From Schmidtea polychroa (taxonomy: Eukaryota), in contig CM097888.1 in NCBI GenBank assembly GCA_044892525.1, positions 12,028,001 to 12,092,000 on the forward strand: a stretch of DNA of 64,000 nt. The letters run 5' to 3'. This document shows positions 1,899-53,156 of the stretch, piece after piece. The translations under genes were made by a program, and so were the position numbers. Each line of letters starts with the position of its first letter. The stretch's first letter is position 1. The notes under the pieces were generated by a model that saw nothing but the letters and a program-made list of their open reading frames with translations, was not told where the DNA came from and searched no databases.

Positions 1899-1901
<3 letters not shown>

Positions 1902-4900
1902 GGCCGGCTTTAGTTGGAAGCGGTGGATGCAAAGCATCGGGGCGCCTCTCGGAAAGGGCGCTATAAAATTTAGAATTTTAGTTTCTTTTTAATATTTAAC
2001 AAAAAAGCCATTAACAAATTTTTTTTAATAAGAATTTTTTTTTTTTTAAATAAAATTTCCTTGAAAAACTACTGGCCTACTAGTTTTCGAAGTGTTTAAG
2101 AATTGTTTAATTATTTCGCAAAACAAAATAAATTATACATGCATAAATTTATTTTGAAACGGCCTGCTATATTCGGTTTAGTTATTTCGATTAAAAAAAT
2201 TAATGCTAAAAAAATTATTTTAAAAGTCTACCAGTTCTATTCAGTTTTCAATCAGTTCAGTTGTTATTTGGTAAACTTTTTTCGCTAATAAAAAAAAATT
2301 TAATATTAAAATTTTAATAGTAAAATAAAAAAGTGTTCAGTACAGTTTAATAGTAAAAAAGTGTTTTGTTTCAGTACATTAGTTATTTTGCGGAATTGAA
2401 TCATTGTACGGTGGTAGGTATTATTTAATTATTTTTATCTTTACTTCTAAAATTTATATTTTTTTAATTGAAAAATTTTTATTAGCTTACCTATATCATA
2501 AAATATGAATTCAAAGACAAAATTATCCGGGTGTGAAAATCGAAAACGAAAGGCGAAGAGAGAGTTGGAGGAACAAAAAAATCAGGGAAGCCTTAACCAA
2601 TATTTAAAAAAAGCAAATTTGACAATACCTACAATAACGTTAACGGATGATCAGATTATTCCAGAGGATAGCACAAATGGTGAAGTTAGAAATAATGCCA
2701 CTAATGAGACACAATCTATAAATTTACAAACAGAAATAACATCTTCATCTAACAAAGAGCTTCAAACCATACATTTAACTGAAACTATAAGTAATAGTGC
2801 TGATTTTCATTCAATTGATCCCGCAACTTGGCCTAAATTTATTAATGATAAAATTAGAAAAATTATTATTGAGCAAGGACCAATGCAAATAAGGAAAGAA
2901 GTTTATCCCCGTGATAATGATGGACGAAGTTTTACTAATTATTATTACAATCGTAAATTACCTAATAATGAAATTATACCAAGATCATGGTTAGTTTATT
3001 CAAGTTCAGCAAACCGTGTTTTCTGTTTTTGTTGTAAATTGTTTATAAATCAAATAGAAGGAAACCAGCATTTGATTATAAATGGTTTTAGTTGCTGGAG
3101 AAATTTGTCAAAAACACTTGCAGCTCATGAAGTTAGTACATTACATGTTAATTGTTTTTTAAAGTGGACTCAATTAAAAAAGAAAATGAACAACTTAACT
3201 ACAATAGATGCTGAACTCGTAAAAGTATACGCAGTTGAAAAGAAACATTGGTACGCTGTTTTGGAGAGAATTGTCAAAATCATAAAATATCTTGCCAGAC
3301 AATGCCTGTCTCTGCGTGGCTCGTCAGATACTATCTATGAAAAAAATAACGGTAACTTTTTAAAATTTGTAGAACTTTTTTCTAAATTTGACATAGTAAT
3401 AGCAAATCATTTAGCAAAGATACAAAAAAAGGAGACACAAACAGTTCATTATTTAGGCAAAACTATACAAAATGAAATAATATCGTTGATCTCTTCGAAA
3501 ATTTTGCAAAATATTATTCAAATGATAATTAATGCCAAATATTTTTCTCTAATATTAGATTGCACTCCTGATATTAGTCATAACGAACAAATGACATTTA
3601 TAGCCAGATTTGTCAATAAAGATGAAAATAATGAAGTTGCAATAAGCGAACATTTTTTGGGATTTTTAAAAGTATCTGACTCCACAGGAAAAGGTTTAGC
3701 AACTTATCTTATTGACAACATTAAAGATTTAGGTTTGAATATTAATGATCTACGTGGACAAGGTTACGATAATGGCGCAAATATGCATGGGAAAAATAAT
3801 GGGGTCCAAAAACGTATTTTAAATTTGAATTCTCGTGCATTTTTCGTCCCATGTGCTGCACATACACTTAATTTAGTAGTGAATGATGCAGCCAAAATTA
3901 ACACAGAATCATTTAGTTTCTTTTCCACTATTCAAACAATTTATAATTTCTTTAGCGCTTCAACAAAACGATGGGAGTTCTTAAAAAAAAATACTAAAAT
4001 TACAGTAAAACCTTTGTCAGCCACCAGGTGGGAATCAAGAGTCGATGCCCTTCGTCCACTTAGGTTTTAAATAGCTGAAATTTTAGATGCTTTAGTTGAC
4101 ATTTATGAAAACCTAGAAATAGATAATAATACAAAGCATGAAGCTAAGGCTGTGGCTTTCAAAATAAAAGAGTATGAATTTATATGTTCAGTGGTTATTT
4201 GGTACGATGTTTTAAGTAAAGTTAACGTTGTTAGTAAACTGCTCCAAAATCCAAATCAAAACTTAAATGTTTCTTCAGTTGCGTTAAATAGTCTTATTAA
4301 ATTTATTGAAGAATATAGATCCGATGAAAATTTTAGTCTTATTCTTCAAACGGCAGACAATATAGCAGCTGATTTAGAAATACCTGCGAAATTCAAAGAT
4401 AATACGTTACGAAGAAGAAAGAAAAAAATTTTTGGTTATGAATCTGTAGACGAAACGCCAGTTGATCCGATACTTAAATATAAAATATCATTTTTTCTGC
4501 CAATTTTAGATATTACTATCAATTCTTTAAAAGAAAGGTTTAATCTTTTCACAAAATATAGTGAAAAATTTGAATTTATACATAATATAAATATGAAATT
4601 AACAAAATGGATGATAATACATTAAAAAAACATTGTTCTGATTTAGAAATAATGCTAACCGATGGCGAGAAAAAAGATATATCTGCAACAGAATTATTTA
4701 ATGAAATAAAAATAGCAAAGGAATTTTTGAAAGACTTTGAAATCCCACTAAACATCTTGCAATATATATATATAAAAATCTACTGGATTCCATTTTTCCC
4801 AATTTTGTAATTGCTATTAAAATATTTTTAACTTTACCAGTTTCAGTTGCTAGCGGAGAACGATCTTTTTCGAAGCTTAAACTAATTAAAAATTATTTAA

Positions 4901-5303
4901 GATCAACAATTTCACAAGAAAGATTAGTTGGTTTAGCAATGATATCGATTGAAAGTGATATATGCGACAAATTAGATATACATAATTTAATTGATGAATT
5001 TGCCAGTTTAAAAGCTAGAAAAGTAAATATCTAGAATAATAGTTTTGTCAATTTTTATACAAAATATATGTATGTTATGTAATTTTTGTATATTATAATA
5101 TTGTTTCAATAAAATAAAAAAATATATAAACAAAATAAAACCTGTATTTCACTTGGAAAAGAATTATTATTAATTTTTTAATGTTTTTATTACAAATTTA
5201 ATATTGCAAATTAAATTACGTTAATTCCAAAAAACCAATAAAATAAATGGGCGTCTAAAATTAGTTTCGCATCGGGGCGCTACTAATGCTAGAGCCGGCG
5301 CTG
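1899..5303 (+). mobile_element. hAT DNA transposon (Tip100/ZMYM1-like), copy 1
   Basis: 15-bp TIRs CAGGGCCGGCTTTAG (1899) and CTAGAGCCGGCGCTG (ends 5303), with 2 mismatches, enclose a transposase. No clean 8-bp TSD (TATATATA vs CACACATA). Confidence 0.95.
2505..5034 (+). pseudogene. hAT transposase (TTF zinc finger, DUF4371-like DDE core, C-terminal dimerisation domain), disrupted
   Basis: Motifs WLVYSSSANRVFCFCCKLF, SLILDCTPDISHNEQM, LRGQGYDNGANM, TRWESR and LPVSVASGERSFSKLKLIKNYLRST. Lesions: an in-frame TAA at 4068-4070 (PLRF*IAEI) and frameshifts near 4600 and 4770. Confidence 0.92.
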
Positions 5304-5699
5304 CACACATATATACATATATGGATATAATTTAAATTAATAATATTGATGTCGTTTTCAGGGGGGGGGATGTTACTAAAAATAGATTTTAGTGATTTTC
5401 CGTAATTTTATTGGAAGATAGGGCCATTGAAACTAAATTTAGAGATAGGGGAATCCCAAAATCAATAATTTGTTTTATAATTTTATTTCCATGAAATAAA
5501 GATAATTNNNNNNNNNNNNNNNNNNNNNNNNNNNNNNNNNNNNNNNNNNNNNNNNNNNNNNNNNNNNNNNNNNNNNNNNNNNNNNNNNNNNNNNNNNNNN
5601 NNNNNNNNNNNNNNNNNNNNNNNNNNNNNNNNNNNNNNNNNNNNNNNNNNNNNATGTTAATAATTATAATAAATGTAAGTTTATATATTTTTATAAGAT

Positions 5700-7260: not shown

Positions 7261-9792
7261 GTTGTACTTGAAAGTCTATATTTTCCTTGGTTTTGATTTA
7301 TGCTTTATGTTGAAATAATATTTATGCTTGCAAGTTATCCATGTAGCCTTGTTTTGGCTATGATGGAGAACAATTTTAACGTAGATTTATTTTGTGGACC
7401 CCTATATCATATCTAGAGAAATTTATGCCTGTAAAATATCATTTCAACAACTTTTGAGTCGAATGAAAAGCACTTTTAGTGGAAAATTGTTTTTGTTATG
7501 AATCTATATATTGTAATTACATAACATTTGTGTCGACAATTTACTTTTTATAGCTATTCAACTTAGTGTAGAATAATGTGAAGATGTTGCCCGAACTTAT
7601 AAGTTATAGATATAATATTAGTAGTTTATAGATAAAGAGACTTTGTCAATATGTCTACGGGAATTCGCGCATACCAAGACCATTACGATAGAGAAATTTA
7701 GTTTGCATCAAAATAGGTTATTTTGTGGGCATCTATAGATATTAGTTCGCTTACCAGTGCGATTGAGAATATATCATCTTAGGTCCTACTCATCGCATGA
7801 ACTTTAGGTTGCAGTATTCTTACAGGGAATAGTTCAGAATTTTTAAGTCTTTAATTGCCTTAAAAAATTTTTGCGCAGGGATCTCCCTGTTATTTTGAGT
7901 TAATTAGTTTCTTAGGTTCACATTGAATTTATAGTTTAAGAGGGATTCGTTTAGAAATAACCAGCTACACTAGCATGTTGTATTGTGTGAAATTTGAGTC
8001 AGGGGATATTCCCCGTTTATCAGTTCCTAATGTTGTGTGCAAAATAGTATAATTTAAGTGTTAATTTAGGTATGTAAGTTAACGAAAAGGTCGATTTAAT
8101 TAAAATTTACCTACTTTCCCGACCACACTGAGTACGGTACGATAGGTCCTATTGTGTTATTTACCCGCGATTAGTATCCCAAAATTTGTTGCGTCCGCAT
8201 AGTCCCTACGACTATACCAACTACCAAGATGAATTTACTCGCCCTACTCATGGTTAAACACCAATAGTTCGTGGCGACCTCTGGTTAAGATTATGATTTT
8301 AGTGCATGTAGGGTCAAGGACCCGAAATCATTATGAACTGTGCATTCATAAATGATAAAGTGCATAGGTGCAGGTTTGGCTGGGATCTCGCTTCAAAATC
8401 ATTGATAACCGACGATCTCATTCAAATCTACACCTCTATAATTAAATAGAAATAATGAAAACAAGGTTTCAATAATAATAATTTATAATTCACAATGAAA
8501 TCGTCCTTACTTACAATCTCAGAAAAATCAAAATCAAAAATTTGGCATAAGAGTAAAAATATTCATTTTCATCATTTTTTTTTTCTTGCTTAAAAAGTGA
8601 CGAAATGTGTTAGTTTATATAGCCTCTGTTTGACGTGTAAGTATACATGCGTGCATTGATGCAGTAAAACAAATTCGGATTATTTTAATTCTCGAACATT
8701 CGATTTTTAATTTTTATCGATTTTGATGGCGATTTTTCAGTAAGAATTTTTGTTTTTATTTTTGGAATTTTGTTTTTGAATTATTTTTTATTAAATTTGC
8801 CTCCATGATGGATTTCAGCATTTCCAGAACATTCCATGCTAAATTCGATCTATTTCTTATTTTTAAATGGTTTTTTTATGATTTCTTTTCTAAAATATTT
8901 ATTATTTTAAACTAAAATATTTATTTTTTATAAATTTTATTGGGTCGTTTGGCGGTCATGATGGATTTCGCCATTTTTATGAATTGTTCTGGATTTTTAT
9001 TCAAAATATCGATATAATTTTCTTTACGTAAGATTTTATGAAGATTTTCTTTAATTTTCTTTTTTAATTTTTACTAATCGCCTTTATTCGAATTTGTTTT
9101 TTGTTGTTTTATGTCTTTCGGTTATATTTGAGTAAGTTTTCGTGTAATACTTCTTGCTCGTGTTTTATTTTATTTTTAATTCAGATGTTTTATTTTTGGG
9201 TATATTATCTCTCTATTATCATTGTTTACTTGGTGTTTTATATATTTTTATTTAAGTAAACTTAATGCTGGGTATGCGTGTTGTGTACTGACACATTTCG
9301 TCCCATTCCTAACTTTGGGTTCAGAAATCAGTTCTAGCCCAACATTTTACTTCATCTCTTAGTTGTTGCCATCTACTTTGGACTTCTATGTAAAAATTTT
9401 CCATGGAAAACAAGTTTTAAATATTCCAAAAAATACGATATTTTATGATAAATGCTTTCTGTCAAAACATCGGCGATTACTTTAACATATTATATTGGAG
9501 TTATTTGTACCATACAGATATTGATTTTAAAGTCGCTATTAATTTATATTACTCTCAAGTTCATTTTTAGGTTCCTAATTTTTCAAAAACTATAAATCTC
9601 TTGACTTCAAAATGAAAAATTGACTCCACATTTTGTCTGATTTTGTATATACCTATTTTAATTTTACAGCCCTTTTTTGTGCTCACCAAAAAAAAATTAA
9701 TAAATTAAATATTTAATAGTTTTTTATCCAAGGATGTTCTCCTTATCTTCTCTGATTTCATCATTCTTCTTAACGTTCTTTCTTTTATTTTT

Positions 9793-10055
9793 AATGCTAC
9801 AAAAATTGGAGAGACTTCCCGTCATCTCTGTATTCGAGCTCGAGAACATTGTAGACCGAAGGCTTTGACCCATATTGGTGAGCACAATAAGGGCTGTAAG
9901 ATTAAAATAGGTATGTCTGATTTTAAAATGTTATTAAAAATTTTCGATAATTATTGGGAACGTGTGATTTGTGAGGCGTTGTTGATAAAATCATTGAATC
10001 GAAAATCAATGTGCAGAATGCAGTAAATACTTGTGTTTTGAGTGTTTTCAAATAA
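9793..10055 (+). pseudogene. Penelope-like retroelement GIY-YIG endonuclease C-terminal relic
   Basis: Translates as KIGETSRHLCIRAREH..HIGEHNKGC..DFKML..YWERVICEALLIKSLN, then after a frameshift KINVQNAVNTCVLSVFK*. This is the typical Penelope EN end (IGET.R.L..R..EH; EALLIK..P.LN.Q). Confidence 0.7.
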
Positions 10056-11388: not shown

Positions 11389-11785
11389 ATGAAAAATATA
11401 GGATTTACATTATCATTAATTATTTGTTTCGTTGCCTTTTTACATACAAATTGCCAAAGTGACTTAATAAAGAAATATATTGAGAAAACTATTGACAATG
11501 AAGTTTCAAAGGCCTGTGGAAAAATGGAATGTAATTTGAATAACCAAAGTAAGAATTATTTTTATTAATTGATTTATTTGTAACAATTTAGTTTTGGAAA
11601 AATTCATTAATGCTAAATGCTGTATTAATGGCGCCGAAGCAAGTTGTTGCTATGGATTAACAAAGTTAAGCATAATTATAATTTCTGTTGTGACAAGTTT
11701 TATTATTCTAATCATTCTTATAAGTATTTGTGTTTGTTTATTCCAAAAACGTTCGTCACCTAGATACCAAAGGGCAGCCTTTTAA
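11389..11785 (+). CDS. Small Shisa-like single-pass membrane protein (117 aa, 2 exons)
   Basis: Exon 11389-11548, 43-nt GT-AG intron (11549-11591), exon 11592-11785. Protein: MKNIGFTLSLIICFVAFLHTNCQSDLIKKYIEKTIDNEVSKACGKMECNLNNQILEKFINAKCCINGAEASCCYGLTKLSIIIISVVTSFIILIILISICVCLFQKRSSPRYQRAAF. It has a signal peptide, a C-C-CC-CC ectodomain, one TM helix, a juxtamembrane CxC and a short tail. Confidence 0.8.
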
Positions 11786-12251
11786 TTTTGGAGGATAATA
11801 ATTTTCAATTTCATTAAAAACAAATAGATTATCATCACTTTTTGTAATTGTTATTTTAATAATGTCTCGTGTCATTTTTAATAAAATATTTGTATTAAAT
11901 TTCTTTAATAAAATATTTTTGGAAATACCACCAATACTTGTAATAGTTTTTACTATTCGCAATATTTTTAAAATATAAATTGACCTATGTTCTTTTAAAT
12001 TTTGAGCTGTCTCAAAAATCATATATATATAGATATGCATCATAACAAAAATTAATATTAACATAATTTACTAAAATACATTTATTATATAAACTTTAAA
12101 AAGCAAAAACTGTGATCATAAAGTTTTACTACATAAAAGAAAAAGTAAAATCAAGCATACCTGGTTTGAAATTACTAAACTTCTCAAGTTAGTTTAAAAT
12201 TTAATCTTAAGTTGGCATGAAAAGTTGAAAAATTACTGCCAGAGCTGCCTA

Positions 12252-13060
12252 CACCAAACATCACTGAGAACCGTTTCCTATAATATAACAAAAAAATAAA
12301 TGATCTTACATTATAGAAACATAAAAACATACATGTTACACTATAGAAATCTAAAATGTGGAAGAAAAATTAAAAACTGCACACAAGCAAAACATATACT
12401 AAAAACACATACAAACTTTTGATTCATAGAAATGCACCGCTTAGATACGTTTCTATAACTTTATTTTAGAAAAAAAAAGATCGCTGCAAATTTTTAAAAA
12501 TATATTTTTAATGAAATTATCAAGAGCAGATGAATTTGGTTCAATGTCTTTTCAATCCAGATTTGATTTCATGAAAGAAGCCCCTCAAATTGAGCTCAGA
12601 AAAAAAATTACAAAAATTAAAAAAGTTATTTTATTCATATTCGTCGATTTTTCCCAAAATGTTTTAGAAAAATACATATTTTTGGTGATTGATTTATTTA
12701 TTTAATTATAATTAAAAATATATCTGACTCCCATTTTTTTGAAATAATTCCAAAATACATAAAGATAAATGTCATAAAATTCCTAAAAACATGAAAATTA
12801 ATTAAAAATAATTTATAATTATACTGTTGATTAAAAGTAATATTTAAGAACTTGAATAATGATCTCATATCTATATGGATCAAAATTCAAGTCTTAAAAT
12901 TTACTTAAAGTTTAACATCTTACCTGAAAGTCATTTGTAAAATGGCTAAAATAAATTTTCAAAATATGATGAGAAATCATGATTCATTAAATTGGTGAGT
13001 GAGCAATTGCTCTACATGTCAACCACGACAATTAAGAATGTATCTCAGTGGTGTTTGGTG
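12252..13060 (-). mobile_element. Non-autonomous TIR element L (Tc1/mariner-like, TA-flanked) carrying a miRNA-like hairpin
   Basis: 18-bp TIRs CACCAAACATCACTGAGA (12252) and TCTCAGTGGTGTTTGGTG (ends 13060), 1 mismatch, with TA on both sides (12250-51, 13061-62). The interior is homologous to element R in inverted orientation. Confidence 0.65.
12837..12906 (-). ncRNA. bantam: bantam/miR-80-family-like pre-miRNA hairpin, copy 1 (predicted mature 12868-12847)
   Basis: Minus strand reads AGTAAATTTTAAGACTTGAATTTTGATCCATATAGATA-TGAGATCATTATTCAAGTTCTT-AAATATTACT, a ~30-bp imperfect stem. The 3' arm begins UGAGAUCAUU (bantam seed GAGAUCA). It lies 18 nt downstream of a CAG/GTAAG donor at 12924. Confidence 0.7.
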
Positions 13061-13064
13061 TATA

Positions 13065-14052
13065 CACCTAACCGCGAAAGTTAACATTGTCTATAATATA
13101 CGTTGGTGTACACACCAGCTGAGGTGAGTCACCAATTATATGACAATGTTAACTTAATTTCATTTATTCAATTTTCCAAAATTCGTTTAAAGGTAAGTTT
13201 TTGAATTAAAGTAATTTTTAGGACTTGAATTTTGATTTTATATTATTATGAGATCATTATTCAAGTTCTTAAATATTACTGTTAGTCAGCATTTATAATA
13301 TTGATAATATATAACATTGATAATTAAATTTCAGGTGTTTTTTTAGGAATTTTATGGTATTTTATTTGGATTTATTTGGATTTATTTGGATTTATTTCGT
13401 AAAAATGTAAGTTAGATATTTTTATAATTATAAATAAGTAAAGTAATCACTAAACATTTATTTTTTAAAGACATTTAGTAAAGAATGGATAAAATATTTT
13501 TTAAGTTTTTGTAATCTTTTTTCGAATTTTGTCTATTTCTGTAATTCTATGAAAATATTAATTTGTTAAAATAATTTATTAAAATTTACGATTTGCGATT
13601 TTTTTCCTGCAAATTCAAAGATGTCGAAGGATCTTCTTCAATATCTGTAAATCTAAAGAAATTTTATATTCTAAATTATTTTTTAATTAAATCTTACGAT
13701 TTATTTACTTCTTTTTCCCTAAAGCTCAACGTAGAGCAGTCGGAATCTGATTCAAAAGTTTTTTTTTACATAATTTTTTAAATAATTTAAAAATATTGAT
13801 ATGTTAATTATATGTTAATCAATCTGAATTTCGCATGAAAAACACTTTACTTAATTTTGTATGTATTTTTCATTATGTGTGCTGTGCTTGTATGCTTTAT
13901 TATTTTCTCTCACTTTTTAGATTCCTATAATAAATATGTTAAATTTCGCGGCATTAAATTTCTACACACAGGTAAGTTTTGGTGTTCCTATAATATATAT
14001 TTATTGATTTTTTTTTTAGATTATAGATAATGTTATATTTCGCGGTTAGGTG
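13065..14052 (+). mobile_element. Non-autonomous TIR element R (Tc1/mariner-like, TA-flanked) carrying a miRNA-like hairpin
   Basis: 33-bp TIRs at 13065-13097 (CACCTAACCGCGAAAGTTAACATTGTCTATAAT) and 14020-14052, 3 mismatches, with TA on both sides (13063-64, 14053-54). Partial TIR copies occur internally at 13142-13155 and about 13944. Confidence 0.7.
13210..13280 (+). ncRNA. bantam: bantam/miR-80-family-like pre-miRNA hairpin, copy 2 (predicted mature 13249-13270)
   Basis: AGTAATTTTTAGGACTTGAATTTTGATTTTATATTATTA-TGAGATCATTATTCAAGTTCTT-AAATATTACT forms a ~33-bp imperfect stem with a 4-nt loop and ~10 bp of lower stem below the 22-mer. The 22-mer is identical to copy 1. It lies 17 nt downstream of an AAG/GTAAG donor at 13193. 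Confidence 0.72.
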
Positions 14053-14699
14053 TATATAATTATTCCGACCAAACAGGTGGGAGTATGATTCCATTGATCG
14101 ATGATCAGACTTGTTTTACTTCAAATATACAACAGAAATTTTCCTTTCTTTTTTATTCAATTTTTGTTTTAATATAATTTTACTTCCATTTTTGTTTATT
14201 ATTTTTATTTGTTTGTTTATTAAAAGATTTTTAATTAAAATTTGTTTACTTGATATTTTATTAGGATTTTAAATAAACTTGCGATTTTCGTGCTACGTGG
14301 CTTGCTCTGACATCACATAAAAATCTTAATTAATTTTACAATAATTTATTGGCCTTCTGGTCTAACAATATTGAGCACTATTCCGTGGAACTACGGAAAA
14401 ATTGATGGCACATACTCAATGTAATGCAAAATTTGGAAGTTTCAGAACGGTAACAATTACGTTGATTTACGAGCAAATGAGAGATTACTGTGAAATGACG
14501 TTGCTCAAGAAAATTACAGGATTTGTTTCACTTTACTGTTGTAAAATTCCTTTCCCAAAGAAAAATGATGAATTTGATAATACAAGTATTTTACCAAAAT
14601 TTGTTTTTCGTTTGTTTGAGTTTTTATTTGAAACATTCACTGTATTCTTTCTTGTGTTCTGGTATGATTGTTGTGTTTTTGTTGGGGGGTTGTGAAAGA

Positions 14700-16300
14700 C
14701 TTTGTTGGTTTGAATTTCGTTGTTAGAAATGTTGTGTGTTGTTTGAATGTTATATTGATATGGTTTTAATCTGCGAATTTTTCTGCTTTTTTTCTGTTTA
14801 TTAATAGTGTATCCACATTTTTGTTTAGATCGATTAGTTTGTAGGAGCCTTCGTATCTTGATTCGAAACCGCTAGTGTAAGGTTTTGTTATTAGTACCGT
14901 ATCAACGATTATGTTTGGTTGTAACTTTTGTTGTCTTTGTTTTTTAGCAGTGTTTTTGGTACGTTTAGATTGGTTTTTATTTTGTCAACAAGCATTTTGT
15001 TTGTGTTTTAAACTTTTCTATTAGATATGGGAGGTTTGTTGAATGTCTGAAAGTTAATTGGCTTGGGATTTTATTATTTATTGATGAAGAGTTATTTCTT
15101 AATTCGATTAGGATTTTTGGAAGTTTGTCTAACCAGTTTCTGTCACTGGCTTTAGTTCTAATTACTTGTTTTAAAGATAAATCTATTTTACCATTCCACT
15201 GTGAGTTGTACGCTGTTGTTCTGACTTTCTGTACTTTATATTTCTCGCAGAGTTTTTTAATATACCGGATTTGAATTGTCTGACTTGGCCGCTTAATAGT
15301 GTTTGGCGCATCCATATCTTGCGAACCAATTCAGTTCTCTGTTTTCGTAAACCGTCTTGGCGGTGGTTTTTTTGATTGGTATTATTTCGAACCAGTTTGA
15401 TCATTGTTAGTAAGTATTTGTAATTGTTGTTAAGTGGGAGCACTCCTACTATATCCACGTGAACGGTTTCGAATGGTTTTGCCTTTGGGAATTCAACTTT
15501 TGTTTTTGTAAATCTTTTTGTTGTTTTGTTTTTTCTGGCTTCTGAAATGATTGTATTGCTTCTATCTTAGTATTATCTGTTTATATGCCGTCTTTATTTA
15601 TTGTGTGCCCCAGAAACATCACTTCTTTCCTAAATATTTAACATTTTTCGGGGTTCAATCTTAGTCCTGCTGTTGAGATGTTCCCTAGAACTCTTCCAGA
15701 TACTTTATAGTGTTCTTCTTCTGTCTTTGTGAATATTAGTATGTCGTCTAAATATACCATCATCCCATCTTACCACAAATCTTTCAATACTTTCGTCATT
15801 AATTCTTGAAATGTTTCTGGTGCCGCTGCAATACCGAACGGCATCCGGTTAAAACAGAACTGTCCTTCTTTTGTTGAGAATGCTGTTTTCTCTTGAGATT
15901 CTTTATCCAACTTCACTTGGTAATAAGCATTTCCCAAGTCAATCAAGCTAAAATATCTGGATCCGTGTAAGATGTCTAAAATTTTTTCTACATTTGGCAT
16001 TGGAAATGCTTGTCTTTCTGTTATCTTGTTTAATTATCTGAAGTCTAGACAAAGCCTGATGTCTTTTTTCTCTTTCTTCCATACACAAACTAAAGGTGTG
16101 TTCCACGGTGAATTACACTTTATAATTATTCCGTTGTTTTCTAGATTTTTTATTGCTTCCTCAATCTTGTCTTCCAAATTTATTGGTTGACGTCTCGGTT
16201 TAATCATTATTGGCTCTCCTTTTGTGATGATCTTATGTTTAATCAGATTGGTACACCCAATATCCCATTTATCTGCCATGAAAACGTTCTTGTTTGCCTG
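14700..16300 (-). pseudogene. Degraded, internally deleted Ty3/gypsy pol (RT plus integrase fragments)
   Basis: RT fragments ADKWD..KPRRQP..SPWNTPLVCV..LCLDFR*LN..DLGNAYYQV..RMPFG..VYLDDIL are closely related to the RT at 29600-30300. They join directly to integrase fragments (FETVHVDIVGVLP; TTAYNSQWNGKI; RYEGSYKL). Many stops and frameshifts. Confidence 0.85.
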
Positions 16301-16379
16301 AAAAAAAAATTTACCTCTCTGTATTTTTGTTCCACAGAGCTCCTTTGCAATTATTGAGAATTTAAACCATTGTTCATTA

Positions 16380-16481
16380 AATTTATTAAAAAGAGAGTTT
16401 GAAGACTATAAATCAGTAATATATCGATGTTTATTGATATATTACTGATTTATAGTCTTCAAACTCTCTTTTTAATAAATT
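16380..16481. repeat. Palindromic mini-element, copy 1 (46-bp arms, 10-nt loop)
   Basis: AATTTATTAAAAAGAGAGTTTGAAGACTATAAATCAGTAATATATC, loop GATGTTTATT, then the exact reverse complement. Related copies at 53054-53107 and 58900-58992. Confidence 0.9.
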
Positions 16482-16937
16482 CAATGGAAAAAATAATCAT
16501 TGGTGAAATTCGAAGAAAAAAAAGTTGCGACTTTCCTTTTGAATAGTGCTTGAGCTCTTGCTAGGTTACGAATTCCCCATAATTCATTTGGGTTCACTCC
16601 ACTGTGTAGCAATTCATTTTGGAAATCATGACCCACTTCATAACAGCAATTTACTACCACTTTGATATATTAATGATAATCAACGAAAAGTTAATAAATG
16701 ATGTTCCACTGTCTCAGAAAGTTGAGTANNNNNNNNNNNNNNNNNNNNNNNNNNNNNNNNNNNNNNNNNNNNNNNNNNNNNNNNNNNNNNNNNNNNNNNN
16801 NNNNNNNNNNNNNNNNNNNNNNNNNNNNNNNNNNNNNNNNNNNNNNNNNNNNNNNNNNTAATTTTAGGAAAATAACGTTTGGCAAAAATATATACTATAT
16901 ATACATAATATATAAAATATACATACATATATATATA

Positions 16938-19900
16938 CAGCGGCGGCTCTAGCATTAGTAGCGCCCCGATGCGAAACTAATTTTAGACGCCCATTTATTT
17001 TATTGGTTTTTTGGAATTAACGTAATTTAATTTGCAATATTAAATTTGTAATAAAAACATTAAAAAATTAATAATAATTCTTTTCCAAGTGAAATACAGG
17101 TTTTATTTTGTTTATATATTTTTTTATTTTATTGAAACAATATTATAATATACAAAAATTACATAACATACATATATTTTGTATAAAAATTGACAAAACT
17201 ATTATTCTAGATATTTACTTTTCTAGCTTTTAAACTGGCAAATTCATCAATTAAATTATGTATATCTAATTTGTCGCATATATCACTTTCAATCGATATC
17301 ATTGCTAAACCAACTAATCTTTCTTGTGAAATTGTTGATCTTAAATAATTTTTAATTAGTTTAAGCTTCGAAAAAGATCGTTCTCCGCTAGCAACTGAAA
17401 CTGGTAAAGTTAAAAATATTTTAATAGCAATTACAAAATTGGGAAAAATGGAATCCAGTAGATTTTTATATATATATATATATATATTGCAAGACGTTTA
17501 GTGGGTTTTCAAAGTCTTTCAAAAATTCCTTTGCTATTTTTATTTCATTAAATAATTCTGTTGCAGATATATCTTTTTTCTCGCCATCGGTTAGCATTTT
17601 TTCTAAATCAGAACAATGTTTTTTTAATGTATTATCATCCATTTTGTTAATTTCTTTTATATTATGTATAAATTCAAATTTTTCACTATATTTTGTGAAA
17701 AGATTAAACCTTTCTTTTAAAGAATTGATAGTAATATCTAAAATTGGCAGAAAAAATGATATTTTATATTTAAGTATCGGATCAACTGGCGTTTCGTCTA
17801 CAGATTCATAACCAAAAATTTTTTTCTTTCTTCTTCGTAACGTATTATCTTTGAATTTCGCAGGTATTTCTAAATCAGCTGCTATATTGTCTGCCGTTTG
17901 AAGAATAAGACTAAAATTTTCATCGGATCTATATTCTTCAATAAATTTAATAAGACTATTTAACGCAACTGAAGAAACATTTAAGTTTTGATTTGGATTT
18001 TGGAGCAGTTTACTAACAACGTTAACTTTACTTAAAACATCGTACCAAATAACCACTGAACATATAAATTCATACTCTTTTATTTTGAAAGCCACAGCCT
18101 TAGCTTCATGCTTTGTATTATTATCTATTTCTAGGTTTTCATAAATGTCAACTAAAGCATCTAAAATTTCAGCTATTTAAAACCTAAGTGGACGAAGGGC
18201 ATCGACTCTTGATTCCCACCTGGTGGCTGACAAAGGTTTTACTGTAATTTTAGTATTTTTTTTAAGAACTCCCATCGTTTTGTTGAAGCGCTAAAGAAAT
18301 TATAAATTGTTTGAATAGTGGAAAAGAAACTAAATGATTCTGTGTTAATTTTGGCTGCATCATTCACTACTAAATTAAGTGTATGTGCAGCACATGGGAC
18401 GAAAAATGCACGAGAATTCAAATTTAAAATACGTTTTTGAACCCCATTATTTTTCCCATGCATATTTGCGCCATTATCGTAACCTTGTCCACGTAGATCA
18501 TTAATATTCAAACCTAAATCTTTAATGTTGTCAATAAGATAAGTTGCTAAACCTTTTCCTGTGGAGTCAGATACTTTTAAAAATCCCAAAAAATGTTCGC
18601 TTATTGCAACTTCATTATTTTCATCTTTATTGACAAATCTGGCTATAAATGTCATTTGTTCGTTATGACTAATATCAGGAGTGCAATCTAATATTAGAGA
18701 AAAGTATTTGGCATTAATTATCATTTGAATAATATTTTGCAAAATTTTCGAAGAGATCAACGATATTATTTCATTTTGTATAGTTTTGCCTAAATAATGA
18801 ACTGTTTGTGTCTCCTTTTTTTGTATCTTTGCTAAATGATTTGCTATTACTATGTCAAATTTAGAAAAAAGTTCTACAAATTTTAAAAAGTTACCGTTAT
18901 TTTTTTCATAGATAGTATCTGACGAGCCACGCAGAGACAGGCATTGTCTGGTAAGATATTTTATGATTTTGACAATTCTCTCCAAAACAGCGTACCAATG
19001 TTTCTTTTCAACTGCGTATACTTTTACGAGTTCAGCATCTATTGTAGTTAAGTTGTTCATTTTCTTTTTTAATTGAGTCCACTTTAAAAAACAATTAACA
19101 TGTAATGTACTAACTTCATGAGCTGCAAGTGTTTTTGACAAATTTCTCCAGCAACTAAAACCATTTATAATCAAATGCTGGTTTCCTTCTATTTGATTTA
19201 TAAACAATTTACAACAAAAACAGAAAACACGGTTTGCTGAACTTGAATAAACTAACCATGATCTTGGTATAATTTCATTATTAGGTAATTTACGATTGTA
19301 ATAATAATTAGTAAAACTTCGTCCATCATCATCACGGGGATAAACTTCTTTCCTTATTTGCATTGGTCCTTGCTCAATAATAATTTTTCTAATTTTATCA
19401 TTAATAAATTTAGGCCAAGTTGCGGGATCAATTGAATGAAAATCAGCACTATTACTTATAGTTTCAGTTAAATGTATGGTTTGAAGCTCTTTGTTAGATG
19501 AAGATGTTATTTCTGTTTGTAAATTTATAGATTGTGTCTCATTAGTGGCATTATTTCTAACTTCACCATTTGTGCTATCATCTGGAATAATCTGATCATC
19601 CGTTAACGTTATTGTAGGTATTGTCAAATTTGCTTTTTTTAAATATTGGTTAAGGCTTCCCTGATTTTTTTGTTCCTCCAACTCTCTCTTCGCCTTTCGT
19701 TTTCGATTTTCACACCCGGATAATTTTGTCTTTGAATTCATATTTTATGATATAGGTAAGCTAATAAAAATTTTTTAATTAAAAAAATATAAATTTTAGA
19801 AGTAAAGATAAAAATAATTAAATAATACCTACCACCGTACAATGATTCAATTCCGCAAAATAACTAATGTACTGAAACAAAACACTTTTTTACTATTAAA

Positions 19901-20334
19901 CTGTACTGAACACTTTTTTATTTTACTATTAAAATTTTAATATTAAATTTTTTTTTATTAGCGAAAAAAGTTTACCAAATAACAACTGAACTGATTGAAA
20001 ACTGAATAGAACTGGTAGACTTTTAAAATAATTTTTTTTAGCATTAATTTTTTTAATCGAAATAACTAAACCGAATATAGCAGGCCGTTTCAAAATAAAT
20101 CTATGCATGTATAATTTATTTTGTTTTGCGAAATAATTAAACAATTCTTAAACACTTCGAAAACTAGTAGGCCAGTAGTTTTTCAAGGAAATTTTATTTA
20201 AAAAAAAAAATTCTTATTAAAAAAAAATGGTTTTTTTGTTAAATATTAAAAAGAAACTAAAATTCTAAATTTTATAGCGCCCTTTCCGAGAGGCGCCCCG
20301 ATGCTTTGCATCCACCGCTTCCAACTAAAGCCGG
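16938..20334 (-). mobile_element. hAT DNA transposon, copy 2 (inverted, ~99% identical to copy 1; the last few TIR bases fall in the gap)
   Basis: Begins CAGCGGCGGCTCTAG at 16938. The reverse complement matches 1904-5303 end to end. The left flank is TA-rich. Confidence 0.95.
17207..19741 (-). pseudogene. hAT transposase, disrupted (copy 2)
   Basis: Same protein as 2505-5034 with few substitutions (E/D, N/D, A/T, I/K). It shares the PLRF* stop and has different homopolymer and (TA)n frameshifts. Confidence 0.92.
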
Positions 20335-22895: not shown

Positions 22896-23816
22896 ATGAC
22901 GGCATCTTATTATCAACCTTCAGTTTCATATTTTGTTAATCAAAGTCGTGATGTGTGGGACCCAGAGGCATCATCACAATTAAATATTTCTTCTTCATCT
23001 GCCATAAGGATAAAAAATGATTTAAGCAACATATATAAGTATTTTCAATGTAATTTGTTTAATTTAGAATATATTTTAAGAGATCCTGTTCCTGGAATTT
23101 TTGTCCTACCAGATAATAGAAATTTATCATGGATACATGCATTGGTTACTGGTCCATTTGAAACTCCTTATGAAGGTGGATTTTTTTACTTTCTAATAGG
23201 ATGTACTGCCGATTATCCACTGAAACCACCTAAAGTTAAATTAAAGACAACTGGTTTTGGTACAGTTCGTTTTAATCCTAATTTTTATAAAAATGGAAAG
23301 GTACATGATTTATTAATTTAAATTTAACTATTTTTTAAGGTATGTTTAAGTATTCTTGGTACATGGTCTGGTCCAGAATGGACTCCTGCTCAAAATTTAT
23401 CTTCTGTTTTGATATCAATCCAATCATTATTGAATGATAAACCATATTTTAATGAACCTGGTTATAGCCAAGAATCTCGCCCAGGTGATAGTGACAGGTA
23501 TAATAATATAATACAACACGAAACAATAAGATGTGCAGTTTGTGAAGTTATGGAAGAGAAAATGCAATTGCCAGATGATTTTAAAGCTATTGTGGAATCA
23601 ACTTTTCCTGATTATTATGATTATTATGTGAGTGTGTGTAATAAAAAGTTAGTATATGATGGGCAAGTAATGGAAGATCCATTCGGTGAAAAACGAGGAA
23701 TATTTCGATTTAAAGAATTACTTAAGTGTTTGGAATCTCTAAAACTTAAATACGACAAAAAATATTCTAAATTAAATATTAATGTCACTGATAAATCTTG
23801 TAGTGATGACTTATAA
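22896..23816 (+). CDS. UBE2Z: Ubiquitin-conjugating enzyme E2 Z (279 aa, 3 exons)
   Basis: Exons 22896-23038, 23081-23300 and 23340-23816, with introns of 42 and 39 nt. Spliced protein has [102 protein letters not shown], all UBE2Z hallmarks, including the catalytic Cys. Confidence 0.95.
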
Positions 23817-27040: not shown

Positions 27041-27353
27041 AAAGAACTCATTAATAATATTATAATTAAATGATAGATCAAAATGGTATAATGATAGTAG
27101 AATCAACAGGAACGATATCGCATTGAAAATTGAAAGTAAAAGACAAAATGAGGAAACAACAACTGCAAGGAGGTTGGATATTGGAGACAAAGTGTTAATC
27201 AAACGAGAAATACGAAACAAGGATCAAGATAGATATGAAGGACCATACACGGTAACAAAACGAATACACGATCGCAGTTATATGCTGAGAGATAAAAGTG
27301 GGAAGTCTTTAATCAGGAATATTGAAAAGATTAAAGAATTTAAAGAAGGGGGA

Positions 27354-27691
27354 TGAAAGGGTAGAATTCACGTTTAAGTTAAAACTGGATACTGCTAATA
27401 AACATTTAAATTGTATATATCAGATTACATAAATTTTTATATAAATATTTAAATTAATAAATTAAAGTAAGTTTAAAATATAAAAATAAATAAAAATATA
27501 TTAAATATTAAAATAAATTAAACCAGCATTGAAATCAGCATCAAAATTAAAATAATAAAAAAGCCTCGAACAGATTGTTTGAATATTACAAAAAAGCGCA
27601 GTTTTGTGAATAAAATAAATTTAGTAATTTTATTTGTTTAATTTATTAATTATGGAGATTGAGAATGAATTCGACGTTGTTGCGGCTAACA
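27354..27691 (+). repeat. 5' LTR of gypsy B
   Basis: 338-bp direct repeat of 32111-32448. Confidence 0.95.
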
Positions 27692-28731
27692 TGGCGACCA
27701 CGCCAACAAACCTATTGATTAGCAGGTTGCTACCAGAAAGATTCCACAGAGACGACGACCTGGAAGAATTCATCAAAGAATGCCAAAATTTTTTTAATAT
27801 TACGAAAACATCTGTCAAGATGCAGATGATTCTGGTTACCACACTGTTGGAGAAACCATTATACGATGAATATGAAAAAGCAGAAGGAAAAACATTTGAA
27901 GAGAAGCTCAGATCGGCATTTTCGAGGCCAAAATCATTATTCGAAGACTTAAAGGAAGCTCTAAATTATGACCAAGGATCCGATTCAGCAGACCACTTTA
28001 TCGAAAAAGTAGAGAAATTAACCAAAAGATTACTGCGACATGAGTGGAACGAAGAAGAAATTAAAAAGTGCCTACTCATGAATGGGGCTCGAGAGAAAAA
28101 AGTTAAAAAGGAAATAGAAATGCAAGAACTAAAGACGTCAGAAGAAATTAAAAGCACAATTAAAAAAGTTGAGAAAGTGAATAAAGCTATAAACCATGTT
28201 AACTCCATCCGACCTATAACATATATGAAACCCGTCAAAACCTACAGAGATGCCGTTCAAAGACCCGCACAGACAAATACAATGCCAATGTCAAAACCAT
28301 TGAAAGCGACTAAGAACGTCGTATGCTGGACATGCCAAAAAGCAGGTCATTTAAGCCGAGAATGTACTATGAAGAGGAGGATTCAGTGTTTTGGATGTGG
28401 AGTATATGGACACGTACGCCGAGAATGTCCAAACATTCAGTGTAGGAGATGTCATCTACAAGGTCACAAAGAAACTGAATGCTATACAAACCTAGAAAGA
28501 TTTAAGCCGAAAATGAATCATTACGGAAGAAATAATGCAGCACACCGAAATAAAGGGGGCCGATTTCAACAGAACAATCAGTATAATAGAAGAGAGGTAG
28601 CAGCAATTGGAAATCAAGATGCAAACTATCAACTGAATTATTCAAGTGAAGCCGAAGAGAAATACGACGAAATGCAATACCCAAACGAGGAAGCTCCATC
28701 ACAGGAGGCGATGATAGGAGCCATTTATTAG
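27652..28731 (+). CDS. gag: Gag of gypsy B with three CCHC zinc knuckles
   Basis: Open ORF from the ATG at 27652 (inside the LTR). Knuckles CWTCQKAGHLSREC, CFGCGVYGHVRREC and CRRCHLQGHKETEC. Confidence 0.9.
   Translation: MEIENEFDVVAANMATTPTNLLISRLLPERFHRDDDLEEFIKECQNFFNITKTSVKMQMILVTTLLEKPLYDEYEKAEGKTFEEKLRSAFSRPKSLFEDLKEALNYDQGSDSADHFIEKVEKLTKRLLRHEWNEEEIKKCLLMNGAREKKVKKEIEMQELKTSEEIKSTIKKVEKVNKAINHVNSIRPITYMKPVKTYRDAVQRPAQTNTMPMSKPLKATKNVVCWTCQKAGHLSRECTMKRRIQCFGCGVYGHVRRECPNIQCRRCHLQGHKETECYTNLERFKPKMNHYGRNNAAHRNKGGRFQQNNQYNRREVAAIGNQDANYQLNYSSEAEEKYDEMQYPNEEAPSQEAMIGAIY
27692..27704 (+). promoter_or_regulatory. Primer-binding site, probably tRNA-Arg(UCG)
   Basis: TGGCGACCACG is complementary to the ...CGUGGUCG-CCA 3' end seen in animal tRNA-Arg(UCG). 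An identical 13-mer follows the LTR of gypsy C. Confidence 0.7.
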
Positions 28732-31700
28732 GTAATTTTGATTTTGATGAAAATGCTGGTTATAATAATGTAAATAATTTTTATAATGTAAATAATTTGA
28801 ATAATGTAAATAATTTGATTAGTGTAGATAATTTTAATATTTTTAGTAAAGATTTATGTAATAATATGGATGATAGGACTAATTTTAATGTTTATAAAAG
28901 TAGCAGTATAGATCATAGAAATGAAAACAACAAAATAATGTGTAGCGATGAAAGAACAGGAGAAAAGTATATAGTTTCCTAAAAAAGTCATTTGATATGA
29001 ATGAAGATAAGATTGAGTGGATTAATGAAATTTCCAATAGTATAAAGAACAAAGTGGAGCAAAATATATTTACGAAAGACGAATGGAAAGGACCTCGTAT
29101 GACTTATCATAAAATGCAAGGTAGACCAAGTATAACACTTGAAATTCAGTGGCGCGGAATTGAGTGTCTGTTAGATACAGGAGCACGAGTTAATGTAATG
29201 TCTAAAGCAGTACTGGATAAATTGGACAAAGTCGAGATAATAAAAAACAGATGAAATGCTAAGGTGTGCAAATGACAGTAAATTGGAGACTATAGGAAAA
29301 GTTCAAATTGAGGTAAAGATAGGGAAGCTAACAAAAATAGTGACCTTTACCGTCGTACAAAACATTGTCCCAGATGTTATTGGGGGTATAGAATTACAGA
29401 AACAATTCGGTATTGAATTAAGATGGATTCAAGAAGGTGAAATGATATCTAACGAACGTATATGTGAAATTGATGATAAATTTGGGAGGAATATTACAAA
29501 TGAAGAAAGATTCCAACATGCGATAGAGAAGTTGAAAGTAAAAGAAGATAAATTGCTTGTAGAAATTATCAAGAGAAATAAATGTGTTTTCATGGCTGAC
29601 AAGTGGGATGTTGGATGCACTGATTTAATTCAACATAAAATTGAAACAAATGGCGGACCAATAATGATAAAGCCCAGAAGACAGCCTATAAACTTGGAAG
29701 AGAAAATAAACATGGCCATTAAAAATCTGGAGGATAATAATATTATAAGGAAGTGTAATTCACCTTGGAATACCCCTTTAGTGTGCGTTTGGAAAAAGGA
29801 AAAGAAGGATATCAGACTCTGTTTGGACTTTAGACAACTTAACAAAATTACTGAAAGACAAGCGTTCCCGATGCCTAACGTTGACGAGATCTTAGATGCT
29901 TTGCATGGTACTAGATATTTTAGTTCTATTGACCTTGGAAACGCATACTATCAGGTGAAGTTGGATAGAGATTCACAGGAGAAAACAGCTTTTTCAACGA
30001 AAGAGGGACAATTCTGTTTCAACCGAATGCCGTTTGGCATCGCGGCAGCACCAGGAACCTTTCAAGAGCTCATGACGAAGATATTAAAGGATTTATGGAA
30101 AGACGGGGTAATGGTTTATCTGGACGATATATTAATTTTTACTAACACAATGGAAGAACACTATAAACTGCTGGAAAGAGTATTGCAGAAAATCGCAGAA
30201 GCTAAACTAAGAATTAATCCTGAAAAATGTCAAATACTGAAAAGCGAAGTGAAATTCTTAGGCCATATTATAAATAGAGACGGCATCCAAACGGATCAGA
30301 GCAAAATTGAAGCTATTCAATCATTTCAAAGGCCGAAATGTGTGAAAAATTTAAGGAGTTTCTTGGGTATTTGCAACTATTATCGAAAATTTATTAAAGA
30401 ATACGCAAAGAAGGCAAGAGCTTTAGAAAGTATATGTGGTAAAAATAGCGACAAAATAATATGGAATGAAAATTGTGAGCAGGCTTTTGAGAATATGAAG
30501 TTGGCATTAATAACCGCACCGATTTTGGTATTTCCTGATTTTAAGAAAGAATTCATACTGGATACGGATGCAAGTTTCGATACAATCGGCGCAGTCTTAT
30601 CACAGAAGAATGACATGGGATATGAGCAAGTTATCGCTTATGGCTCACATGCGATGAATGACCACGAAAGAGGCTATTGTATTACAAGAAAGGAACTCCT
30701 GGCTATATATTATTTTTGTCGGCATTTCAATCACTATTTATATGGAAAAAGATTTACACTACGTACAGATCATAAAGCAATAACATTTATGCTAACCACG
30801 AAGAAGCCAATTACAGCTCAATTCCAGACCTGGATAAACTATTTAAGTAGCCTTGATATAAAAATGGAATTTAGAAAGGGTACACTACATACTAACGCAG
30901 ACATGTTATCGAGGAAAACGTGTGGCACATGTGTACAATGTCTTATGGAACACGATAATCCTAAAATGGGAAGAATGAAAACCAGAATGTCAAATATAAT
31001 GACTGAAGACAAAGGAGAGAAATGGCAAATGAATAGTGATGAAATAGAGGAGATTAAAAATAAAATAAGAACGCAAAAGAGTGGAAGGTTTATAATAGAG
31101 GATAATATTATTTATACCAAAGATAAAAGAATATGGATACCAGAGAGCAAAATAAGAGAAATGATTAACAAAACACATCTATTACTGTGCCATGCTGGAG
31201 TTGACAAAGTTATCAAATACATACAAAACAATTTTGATATGAGAGATCTAATAAAGGAAGTAAAAACGACAATATCAAATTGCGAATCGTGTCAAAAAGT
31301 TAAAGTTGTAACTACAAAGACGAAAGAGAAACCAAAAGTACTTGAAGCATCCGAACCTTCGAGAAAATATATATGGACATATGTGGCCCAATGAAAGAAA
31401 CATTTAACAGGAAAAGATACATTTGCGCAATAATCGACCATTACAGCAAATACATCTCGTTAACAGCTATAAATAAACAGGATGAAGAGACAATTGGGAA
31501 GATATTGTTAAACAACTGGATTCTAAAATTTGGGGCACCCAAAGAACTACATGTAGATTGCGGGAAAACATTCGAAGCTAATAGCATAAAGAATATAAGC
31601 AAAAATGCAGGGTTCGAGATAGTGTATTCGAGTCCATATCATCATAATACGAATGGTATAATCGAAAGACAATTCCGGACAATAAGAGATTTTATTAATG

Positions 31701-32113
31701 CATCGCTGAAAGACGGAAATACAAAAGACTGGGCAGACCTTATCCCAGATATAGAATATACACTCAACGTAACCATTCAAAAAACAACGGGAGTAAGCCC
31801 AGCTGAAATTATTTTTGGTAGGAAAATTGATAGATCAAAATGGTATAATGATAGTAGAATCAACAGGAACGATATCGCATTGAAAATTGAAAGTAAAAGA
31901 CAAAATGAGGAAACAACAACTGCAAGGAGGTTGGATATTGGAGACAAAGTGTTAATCAAACGAGAAATACGAAACAAGGATCAAGATAGATATGAAGGAC
32001 CATACACGGTAACAAAACGAATACACGATCGCAGTTATATGCTGAGAGATAAAAGTGGGAAGTCTTTAATCAGGAATATTGAAAAGATTAAAGAATTTAA
32101 AGAAGGGGGATGA
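28680..32113 (+). pseudogene. pol: Pol of gypsy B (protease, RT, RNase H, integrase), reached by -1 frameshift; three 1-nt indels
   Basis: Motifs LLDTGARVNVM, YLDDIL, LDTDASF..AYGS..ELLAI..TDH, HLLLCH..CESC, DICGP and DCGKTFE..SSPYHHNTNGIIER. Frame breaks at about 28980, 29250 and 31370, each in a homopolymer. Confidence 0.92.
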
Positions 32114-32448
32114 AAGGGTAGAATTCACGTTTAAGTTAAAACTGGATACTGCTAATAAACATTTAAATTGTATATATCAGATTACATAAATTTTTATATA
32201 AATATTTAAATTAATAAATTAAAGTAAGTTTAAAATATAAAAATAAATAAAAATATATTAAATATTAAAATAAATTAAACCAGCATTGAAATCAGCATCA
32301 AAATTAAAATAATAAAAAAGCCTCGAACAGATTGTTTGAATATTACAAAAAAGCGCAGTTTTGTGAATAAAATAAATTTAGTAATTTTATTTGTTTAATT
32401 TATTAATTATGGAGATTGAGAATGAATTCGATGTTGTTGCGGCTAACA
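32111..32448 (+). repeat. 3' LTR of gypsy B
   Basis: Begins with the TGA stop of integrase, directly after the PPT. Confidence 0.95.
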
Positions 32449-34370: not shown

Positions 34371-34825
34371 CAAACTATTCTAGACTCAAATTTCTAACAG
34401 AACACAAAAGAAACATCATATGATACCAATCATATAAGTAGAAGTCATAGGTCAGACCATCAAGTTAAATGAATTGTTGGGCTAGAAAGAGTAAAACGTC
34501 TTTTTAATCAAACTTTCGAATTTTATTTTTAAGCTTAGAATCTTATATATTTCTTAGTTAGGGATTTTAGCATTGGGAAATCAATCAAAATATAAGAATG
34601 ATAAACTTTAGATTAAAAAATAATAATTAAAAGAAAATAAAATAAGGAAACTAATAAATAATAAAAATAAATAAAATTAGGAAAAGACGCAAAAATATAA
34701 GGTATCAATCAGGAGTAAGTCAGATAAAATAAATTAAGGAAAATAAAATCAAATAATTAAATTAACAAAAATAAAATAATTAAAATAATATAAAATGATG
34801 ATTGCTTGGTAGCAGCATTTATTAT

Positions 34826-34987
34826 TTAAAACAATAAAATGATAATTTAAGCCTTTTGCTGCAAATAATGTATTTAATGAAAGAATTTTCGACTATACTA
34901 TCGTATGGACTATCGTATAATCGAAAATTCTTTCATTAAATACATTATTTGCAGCAAAAGGCTTAAATTATCATTTTATTGTTTTAA
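34826..34987. repeat. Perfect inverted repeat (67-bp arms, 28-bp spacer)
   Basis: 34826-34892 is the exact reverse complement of 34921-34987. The spacer holds two ACTATCGTAT copies. Confidence 0.9.
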
Positions 34988-35463
34988 TTAAAAGAATAAC
35001 AGTAAAATAATAAATAAAATAGAAAAATGCGCAAATTGCACCAATACTTAATCCTGATTGGATAAGATCGTAGCAAAACCCGTATATATACGAGCATCAG
35101 AGATTGATTTTCCAATGCTATTTTTTACTTTACTTAGGTACTTAGGTAAGCAATATCAATAAAACCAATATATTTTAACATTTTGAGCCAATTTAATCGA
35201 GAAGTATAAATCGAATCGACCCAGTTTAACCTTTGGAGCCAGTATCTCGGAAAAATGTTATTATTCTTGTTAATTGTGAATGTGAAATGTTTCAAGTATA
35301 TTAATAGTAAAGTATTGTTTTTATAACTATTAAAATTTTTAAACAATCAAACTTTCTTTTTCCTCTCACAAGTTTATGAATATTTTATTAAAAGTAGAAG
35401 TAATCGTAACAATTTTCAGGATTTTTATGTTTTTATGAATAATTCAATTTTTACGATTTTTTT

Positions 35464-53107: not shown

Positions 53108-53156
53108 TCAATGGAAAAAATAATCTGTGGTGAAATTGGAAGAAATAAAAGTTCTT

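Follow-up and report, generated by a model that had tools for sequence, protein, structure and literature searches.

Two adjoining inverted-repeat-bounded units in Schmidtea polychroa, each enclosing a mir-753 hairpin and sharing features of non-autonomous DNA transposons

We analysed a stretch of 64,000 nucleotides from Schmidtea polychroa (GenBank assembly GCA_044892525.1, contig CM097888.1, positions 12,028,001 to 12,092,000 of the forward strand), referred to below as the window, which is 70% A+T. At positions 12250-14056 of the window lie two adjoining units, L and R, each of which is bounded by terminal inverted repeats (TIRs) and encloses a hairpin of the microRNA (miRNA) family mir-753. 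Read 5' to 3', the layout is TA, L, TA TA, R, TA, and the features of the locus are collected in Table 1. An initial annotation of this DNA had described two TIR-bounded, TA-flanked units that lack a transposase and are inverted homologues of each other over part of their interiors, and both units were found where it had placed them. The structure of the two elements is confirmed.

Table 1. Features of the L and R units, in order of position in the window (a slash marks the boundary at a splice-like site; ORF, open reading frame)
Feature	Position	Strand	Remarks
TA dinucleotide at outer L end	12250..12251	.	read directly
Element L, 809 bp, non-coding, TIR-bounded	12252..13060	- (strand by its miRNA)	longest ORF 64 aa
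L outer TIR, 18 nt	12252..12269	+	17/18 against inner TIR
Intron-like unit of L, 141 nt (putative)	12783..12923	-	CAG/GTAAGA donor-like, TTTTTAG/GAATTTTATG acceptor-like
mir-753 hairpin in L	12841..12901	-	Rfam RF04089 65.2 bits, E = 1e-12; fold -27.2 kcal/mol, z = -7.8
3p-arm 22-mer TGAGATCATTATTCAAGTTCTT, presumed mature miRNA, L copy	12846..12867	-	identical to R copy
Conserved TCACCAATT block with CCAAT motif, L	12990..12998	-	upstream of donor; identical in both copies
L inner TIR, 18 nt	13043..13060	-	17/18 against outer TIR
TATA junction	13061..13064	.	TA of L side plus TA of R side; same 4-mer as past the far R end
Element R, 988 bp, non-coding, TIR-bounded	13065..14052	+	longest ORF 62 aa
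R inner TIR, 36 nt	13065..13100	+	32/36 against outer TIR
Conserved TCACCAATT block, R	13129..13137	+	upstream of donor; identical in both copies
Intron-like unit of R, 154 nt (putative)	13193..13346	+	AAG/GTAAGT donor-like, TTTTTAG/GAATTTTATG acceptor-like
mir-753 hairpin in R	13215..13275	+	Rfam RF04089 57.6 bits, E = 2e-11; fold -32.4 kcal/mol, z = -8.3
3p-arm 22-mer, presumed mature miRNA, R copy	13249..13270	+	identical to L copy
Third, internal copy of R repeat core, CCGCGAAATTTAACAT	13936..13951	-	94 bp inside outer TIR, orientation alike
R outer TIR, 36 nt	14017..14052	-	32/36 against inner TIR
TATA at outer R end	14053..14056	.	read directly

The two ends of L, which begins CACCAAACATCACTGAGA (12252-12269), are reverse complements of each other with a single mismatch (17/18, against 13043-13060) and stand 773 nt apart. 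In R, the arms at 13061-13100 and 14017-14056 are 90% complementary over 40 nt when the flanking TATA is included, and 32/36 when counted from CACC, with 916 nt between the repeats. The significance of the TIRs was determined against dinucleotide-preserving shuffles of the window, in which 0.02 matches were expected for the L TIR (with up to 3 mismatches) and 0.00 for the R TIR. The two units meet at GGTG-TA-TA-CACC, and TA is present on all four flanks of L and R. R is bordered by TATA on both sides, and the 4-bp flanks of L are CCTA versus TATA, which agree at 2 bp. The TA flanks fit a TA target, although this is weak evidence by itself in a sequence where TA accounts for 10-11% of dinucleotides. 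Because the longest ORF within L or R is 64 aa, neither unit carries a transposase, as had been stated in the initial annotation.

L and R are homologous in inverted orientation. By blastn, positions 348-749 of L aligned with 13523-13110 at 70.5% identity (E = 1e-55), and positions 27-167 of L aligned with 14026-13853 at approximately 75%, matching the outer 140 nt of L to the outer 170 nt of R. When reverse-complemented L was aligned with R using MAFFT, the homology ran from end to end, the identity being 67% in the aligned columns, or 52% if gaps are included. The inverted homology that had been reported for about 450 bp of the interiors is real, and its extent is larger than claimed. In ungapped comparison, L and R matched at 54/80 positions reading inward from the outer ends, compared to 17/80 reading outward from the flanking TA. 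The repeated unit is therefore exactly the TIR-bounded unit, and the TIR termini are the limits of the homology between L and R. The pair is mirror-symmetric about 13062.

Within each unit lies an internal miRNA hairpin that is distinct from a TIR fold-back. Both hairpins aligned across the full 62-position mir-753 model (RF04089, gathering score 62 bits), the conserved arm being 3p; the L hairpin scored above gathering (65.2 bits), whereas the R hairpin scored below it (57.6 bits) yet gave a full-length match. Between L and R, the presumed mature 22-mer is identical (22/22), compared to 53/61 for the hairpin and 66% for the remaining element. This 22-mer sits within a 34-nt run that is identical in the two copies, and the chance of such a run arising anywhere is approximately 5e-4 at the 66% background. 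The consensus fold contains 28 pairs, and changes in the 5p arm keep the pairing, only to G-U pairs. Altogether, the conservation of the two hairpins, with the 3p arm intact and the loop and 5p arm variable, is the pattern that a selected canonical miRNA would be expected to leave.

The hairpin family mir-753, already curated, received its name first in the planarian Schmidtea mediterranea. The hairpins had been described as carrying a bantam seed, and this holds at the seed level but not at the family level, as the bantam model (RF00727) gave 26.8 and 24.0 bits against a gathering score of 61. Because these scores are so far below gathering, the bantam link depends on the initial 10 nt of the 3p arm, the only stretch that matches conserved positions in the alignment to this model. 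A paper on Toxocara lists miR-753b-3p with the seed GAGAUCA (PMC4842261). No other Rfam miRNA family reached its cut-off anywhere in the window. Candidate matches to other miRNA families at 16380 and 53996 were below threshold and were rejected; both sites are perfect fold-back palindromes.

The surroundings of the hairpins are also shared between the units. In R, a donor-like site is located 22 nt upstream of the hairpin and an acceptor-like site 71 nt downstream, and L is laid out alike, with the donor-like AG/GTAAG kept in both elements at approximately 22 nt upstream of the hairpin. The hairpins lie 150-220 nt (153-221 nt) from the inner element ends and the junction, without relation to the TIRs. 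Further upstream, the TCACCAATT block may represent a putative promoter element. These consensus features point to a putative small intron-hosted miRNA gene that would be contained entirely within each element. A mirtron was ruled out, because the hairpin ends do not abut the splice-like sites, and no second conserved hairpin was detected in the well-conserved 120 nt downstream of the miRNA. On the left side of the locus, a putative small two-exon gene was recognised by eye at approximately 11389-11785 (+). Its start resembles a signal peptide and its C-terminal stretch is hydrophobic; it terminates about 460 bp upstream of L and is convergent with the L miRNA.

We then compared the terminal repeats of L and R with each other. 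The CACC(A/T)AAC start that had been noted for both elements is common to all four ends, with 7-8/8 positions matching at each. In the first 18 nt, L's own ends agree at 17/18 positions and those of R at 16/18, whereas any L end compared with any R end gives 8/18. At positions 9-26, the agreement is 12/18 (L) and 15/18 (R) within an element and 5-7/18 between elements. As a null model for the ends, we used a single local duplication followed by neutral decay at the body rate (66% identity), under which the probability of 17/18 is 0.005 and that of 32/36 is 0.0015. Two insertions from two subfamilies are favoured because the ends agree within each element while those of L and R differ. Concerted ends within an element together with divergence between elements would correspond to the subfamily pattern of mobile elements, and these comparisons favour two insertions over a simple palindromic duplication. 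The core of the R repeat has three matches in the window, all within R, the third being the internal copy listed in Table 1. Separately, a TACACCAAAC site at 50588-50609, the fifth in the window (approximately 0.17 expected by chance), has no partner end within reach and was treated as chance; it may be either the lone end of a related element or a chance occurrence. A sequence at 55298 that nearly matches the L repeat, with flanks other than TA, was also treated as chance.

The initial annotation had read the TA flanks and short TIRs as a Tc1/mariner signature. TA is indeed found at all four flanks, but the superfamily assignment rests on TA alone, a dinucleotide that is abundant here, and CAC...GTG termini are a hallmark of the Chapaev/CMC (Chapaev-Mirage-CACTA) group. 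Members of this group have invariable 5'-CAC...GTG-3' termini and a 3 to 4-bp target-site duplication, and Schmidtea mediterranea is in the species list of the paper describing them (PMC4079192). Consistent with such an affiliation, all four ends of L and R read CACC...GGTG, and the identical TATA flanks of R fit a 3 to 4-bp duplication; unlike Chapaev/CMC elements, however, L has flanks that match at TA only, and no CMC transposase is present in the window. The IR/DR group of Tc1/mariner is characterised by repeated binding sites inside the ends (PMC5224488). L and R resemble non-autonomous Tc1/mariner-type elements in having TA on both sides, short to medium TIRs and no ORF, and R, in a manner reminiscent of the IR/DR group, additionally has a subterminal copy of its repeat core, but the termini of L and R start with CAC and were not matched to any Tc1/mariner element. 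Pfam scans of 24 ORFs of the window, all of the longest included, returned only hAT, retroelement and ubiquitin-conjugating enzyme domains.

In their TIRs, small size (809 and 988 bp), lack of coding capacity and homology ending at the TIRs, L and R agree with non-autonomous elements of the MITE (miniature inverted-repeat transposable element) type. Elements of this kind have been connected with miRNAs before. The precursor of human mir-548, which derives from Made1, arises when the inverted repeats of that element fold back on themselves (PMC1784062), and in plant MITE-miRNAs the element itself is the hairpin, the link being made via transcription from introns (PMC9641971). L and R have in common with these cases the association of a short non-autonomous TIR element with a miRNA precursor; they differ in that their TIRs, 0.8-1 kb apart, do not form the precursor and the hairpin is a separate internal unit belonging to a curated family. 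A TIR-fold-back miRNA of the Made1/mir-548 type was thus ruled out, as the hairpins are internal units of 61 nt and the TIRs are separated by 773 and 916 nt. The family description of mir-753 (RF04089) covers the hairpin only, whereas here the hairpin stands within a TIR-bounded unit, and a literature search found no description of a genomic or TIR-bounded context for mir-753. L and R are also similar to products of Pack-type transduplication, being TIR-bounded non-autonomous elements with an interior that resembles a host-type gene. To our knowledge, the known Pack-type cases carry fragments of protein-coding genes; the cargo of L and R is, instead of such a fragment, a putative miRNA gene. 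An element bounded by TIRs and enclosing a selected miRNA gene as a separate unit would be new relative to the documented TIR-fold-back cases.

Weighing these data, we lean with modest confidence towards the view that a non-autonomous cut-and-paste DNA transposon is present here in two copies, L and R, which represent two diverged subfamilies and each carry a miRNA gene. According to this proposal, L and R would have inserted head to head, 2 to 4 bp apart, each mobilised in trans by a transposase that would recognise inverted repeats ending in CAC...GTG and insert at TA or TATA. The internal content would be a small miRNA gene, comprising a short upstream segment with the conserved CCAAT-containing block, followed by the splice-donor-like site, an intron-like stretch of 141 or 154 nt with the mir-753 hairpin, and the conserved acceptor-like site. 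Like an ordinary intronic pre-miRNA, the hairpin would then be processed to a 22-nt 3p species that carries the GAGAUCA (bantam-type) seed and acts on mRNAs of the host. From the features of the two copies we infer mobility in the past, the transcription unit, the processing and any host effect. The presence of further TA-flanked TIR elements in a transposon-rich window also suggests support for a transposon origin.

Several observations weigh against this proposal. Only two copies are known, and they stand side by side; sensitive blastn searches with L and R revealed no third copy in the other 62 kb of the window, where only AT-rich noise of about 60% identity was obtained. No empty site was found in the window, in which the flanks of L and R are unique by blastn, and no transposase with matching ends is present in it, the sole DNA transposase being that of hAT elements with unrelated ends. 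When a metagenome collection was scanned for exact occurrences of the 22-mer and of the R repeat, 0 matches were obtained, as in a scan of prokaryotic genomes with the 22-mer, and protein searches with ORFs over the L hairpin region and the L body gave no matches. Look-ups of the exact products of the hAT ORF, a retroelement pol ORF and an ORF within L likewise returned no record. In addition, the L TIR measures only 18 nt, TA dinucleotides are common in this sequence, the splice sites and the transcription unit are consensus matches only, and a head-to-head pair would also be produced by an inverted local duplication.

Such a duplication, which we consider rather unlikely as the origin of the pair, would make the locus a host mir-753 pair that arose by local inverted (palindromic) duplication, with ends that are not transposon ends; alternatively, a single ancient element would have been present and the locus then duplicated in place without transposition. 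miRNA families frequently expand through local duplication, and the arrangement is suggestive of one here, since the copies adjoin each other with mirror symmetry about 13062, the distance of the hairpins from the junction is 153-221 nt on either side, and no dispersed copy occurs within 62 kb. A palindromic origin would also reduce the four TA flanks to just two independent observations. The termini, however, are difficult to reconcile with it. With neutral decay after duplication, the ends within an element should match at approximately 66%, whereas 17/18 and 32/36 were observed, and the ends of L should resemble those of R at the level of the body, whereas only 8/18 positions agree. Moreover, on each outer side the duplicated unit stops precisely where the repeat ends. 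The likeness of the ends within each element would then require gene conversion or a host function of the ends, and conversion of tracts of 18 to 36 nt located 0.8-1 kb apart, with none in between, is ad hoc. The same ends bear on a further alternative, that 12252-14052 is a single long fold-back (palindromic) element of which L and R are the inverted arms. Both outer ends begin CACC(A/T)AAC with TA beside them, and homology extends along the whole of the arms, as this arrangement would demand; yet between the outer ends just 8/18 and 21/36 positions match, and each has a better partner at the centre (17/18 and 32/36), and the centre consists of two complete termini with TATA between them, which is expected of abutting elements and not of a loop. 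We consider a single fold-back element very improbable.

It is also conceivable, though in our judgement unlikely, that the elements were mobile and the hairpin was born inside the element instead of being captured, in which case mir-753 would be a transposon-born family and its bantam-type seed coincidental. The bantam scores of just 24-27 bits against a gathering score of 61 are compatible with this, and transposon-born miRNA families are well documented (PMC1784062, PMC9641971). In the known cases, however, the element's inverted repeats fold back on themselves (PMC1784062), whereas here the hairpin is an internal unit of 61 nt that lies 150-220 nt from the nearest end, and its conservation is the pattern that would mark a selected canonical miRNA.

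An extended form of the transposon proposal, to which we give tentative and limited credence, is that the transposon family carries a complete selected mir-753 gene, with the bantam-type seed, the intron and possibly its own promoter, and that this gene was multiplied by transposition. If true, this would constitute a route for the expansion of miRNA families that is distinct from both local duplication and TIR fold-back origin. Cut-and-paste elements would then copy and move working miRNA genes, which would bear on the evolution of seed dosage and raise the question of whether it is the element or the host that gains from a miRNA cargo. The role as a selfish regulator of host growth or piRNA pathways that the initial annotation had suggested is speculative. 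Should L and R be the sole pair in the genome, the locus would be an ordinary mir-753 duplication, though one whose history was unusual.

Beyond L and R, the window is rich in transposons, with two hAT copies, two LTR-type (long terminal repeat) retroelements and, just right of R, the remnant of a reverse transcriptase. The two hAT copies, with a DUF4371/ZMYM1-like transposase, occupy 1899-5304 (+) and approximately 16940-20334 (-); they are 98.7% identical, lie in inverted orientation and bracket the miRNA locus. Their ends are CAGGGCCGGCTTTAG, both copies have at least one interruption of the transposase frame, the second enters a stretch of N, and the best match in a search with the transposase was 59%. 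These flanking copies were considered as an autonomous partner of L and R and ruled out, as their ends (CAGGGCCGGCTTTAG) are unrelated. Nearest to R, a degraded retroelement at 15770-16000 (-) is represented by a reverse-transcriptase remnant (Pfam RVT_1, E = 1e-13), whose nearest end is approximately 1.7 kb to the right. A Gypsy-type LTR retroelement extends over 27068-32448; its 624-bp LTRs share 99.7% identity, and it comprises a gag-like ORF with a zinc knuckle as well as reverse transcriptase, RNase H and integrase in two consecutive ORFs. A second retroelement at approximately 44587-49157, also with reverse transcriptase, RNase H and integrase, is bounded by 114-bp direct repeats that are 95.6% identical and is coded in three consecutive ORFs, the pol domains being in the last two.

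Two smaller TA-flanked TIR elements, at 9652-9911 (260 bp) and 39152-39556 (405 bp), have ends unrelated to those of L and R; the ends of the latter begin ...CAGTGCTCGAAGTG. Near-perfect fold-back palindromes of 90-170 nt were found at 16375-16486, 58900-58992 and 53064-53153, which are mutually related, and at 53987-54092 and 34822-34991. These gave sub-threshold Rfam matches to MIR1878 and mir-4536 and are of the TIR-fold-back hairpin type, unlike the hairpins of L and R. A compound repeat at 52007-52905 contains perfect 123-nt inverted repeats (52007-52129 and 52467-52589) and 318-bp direct repeats (52134-52451 and 52588-52905) that are 99.4% identical.

Among protein-coding sequences, a gene for a UBE2Z-like ubiquitin-conjugating enzyme, which contains two introns of approximately 40 nt, is located at approximately 22896-23816 (+). 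Its best named matches were from flatworms (Trichobilharzia, Schistosoma and Spirometra), at about 60%, and its best match overall was 71%. Finally, an isolated ORF at 61328-61978 (+), which adjoins a stretch of N, encodes a hAT C-terminal dimerisation domain (E = 1e-10).

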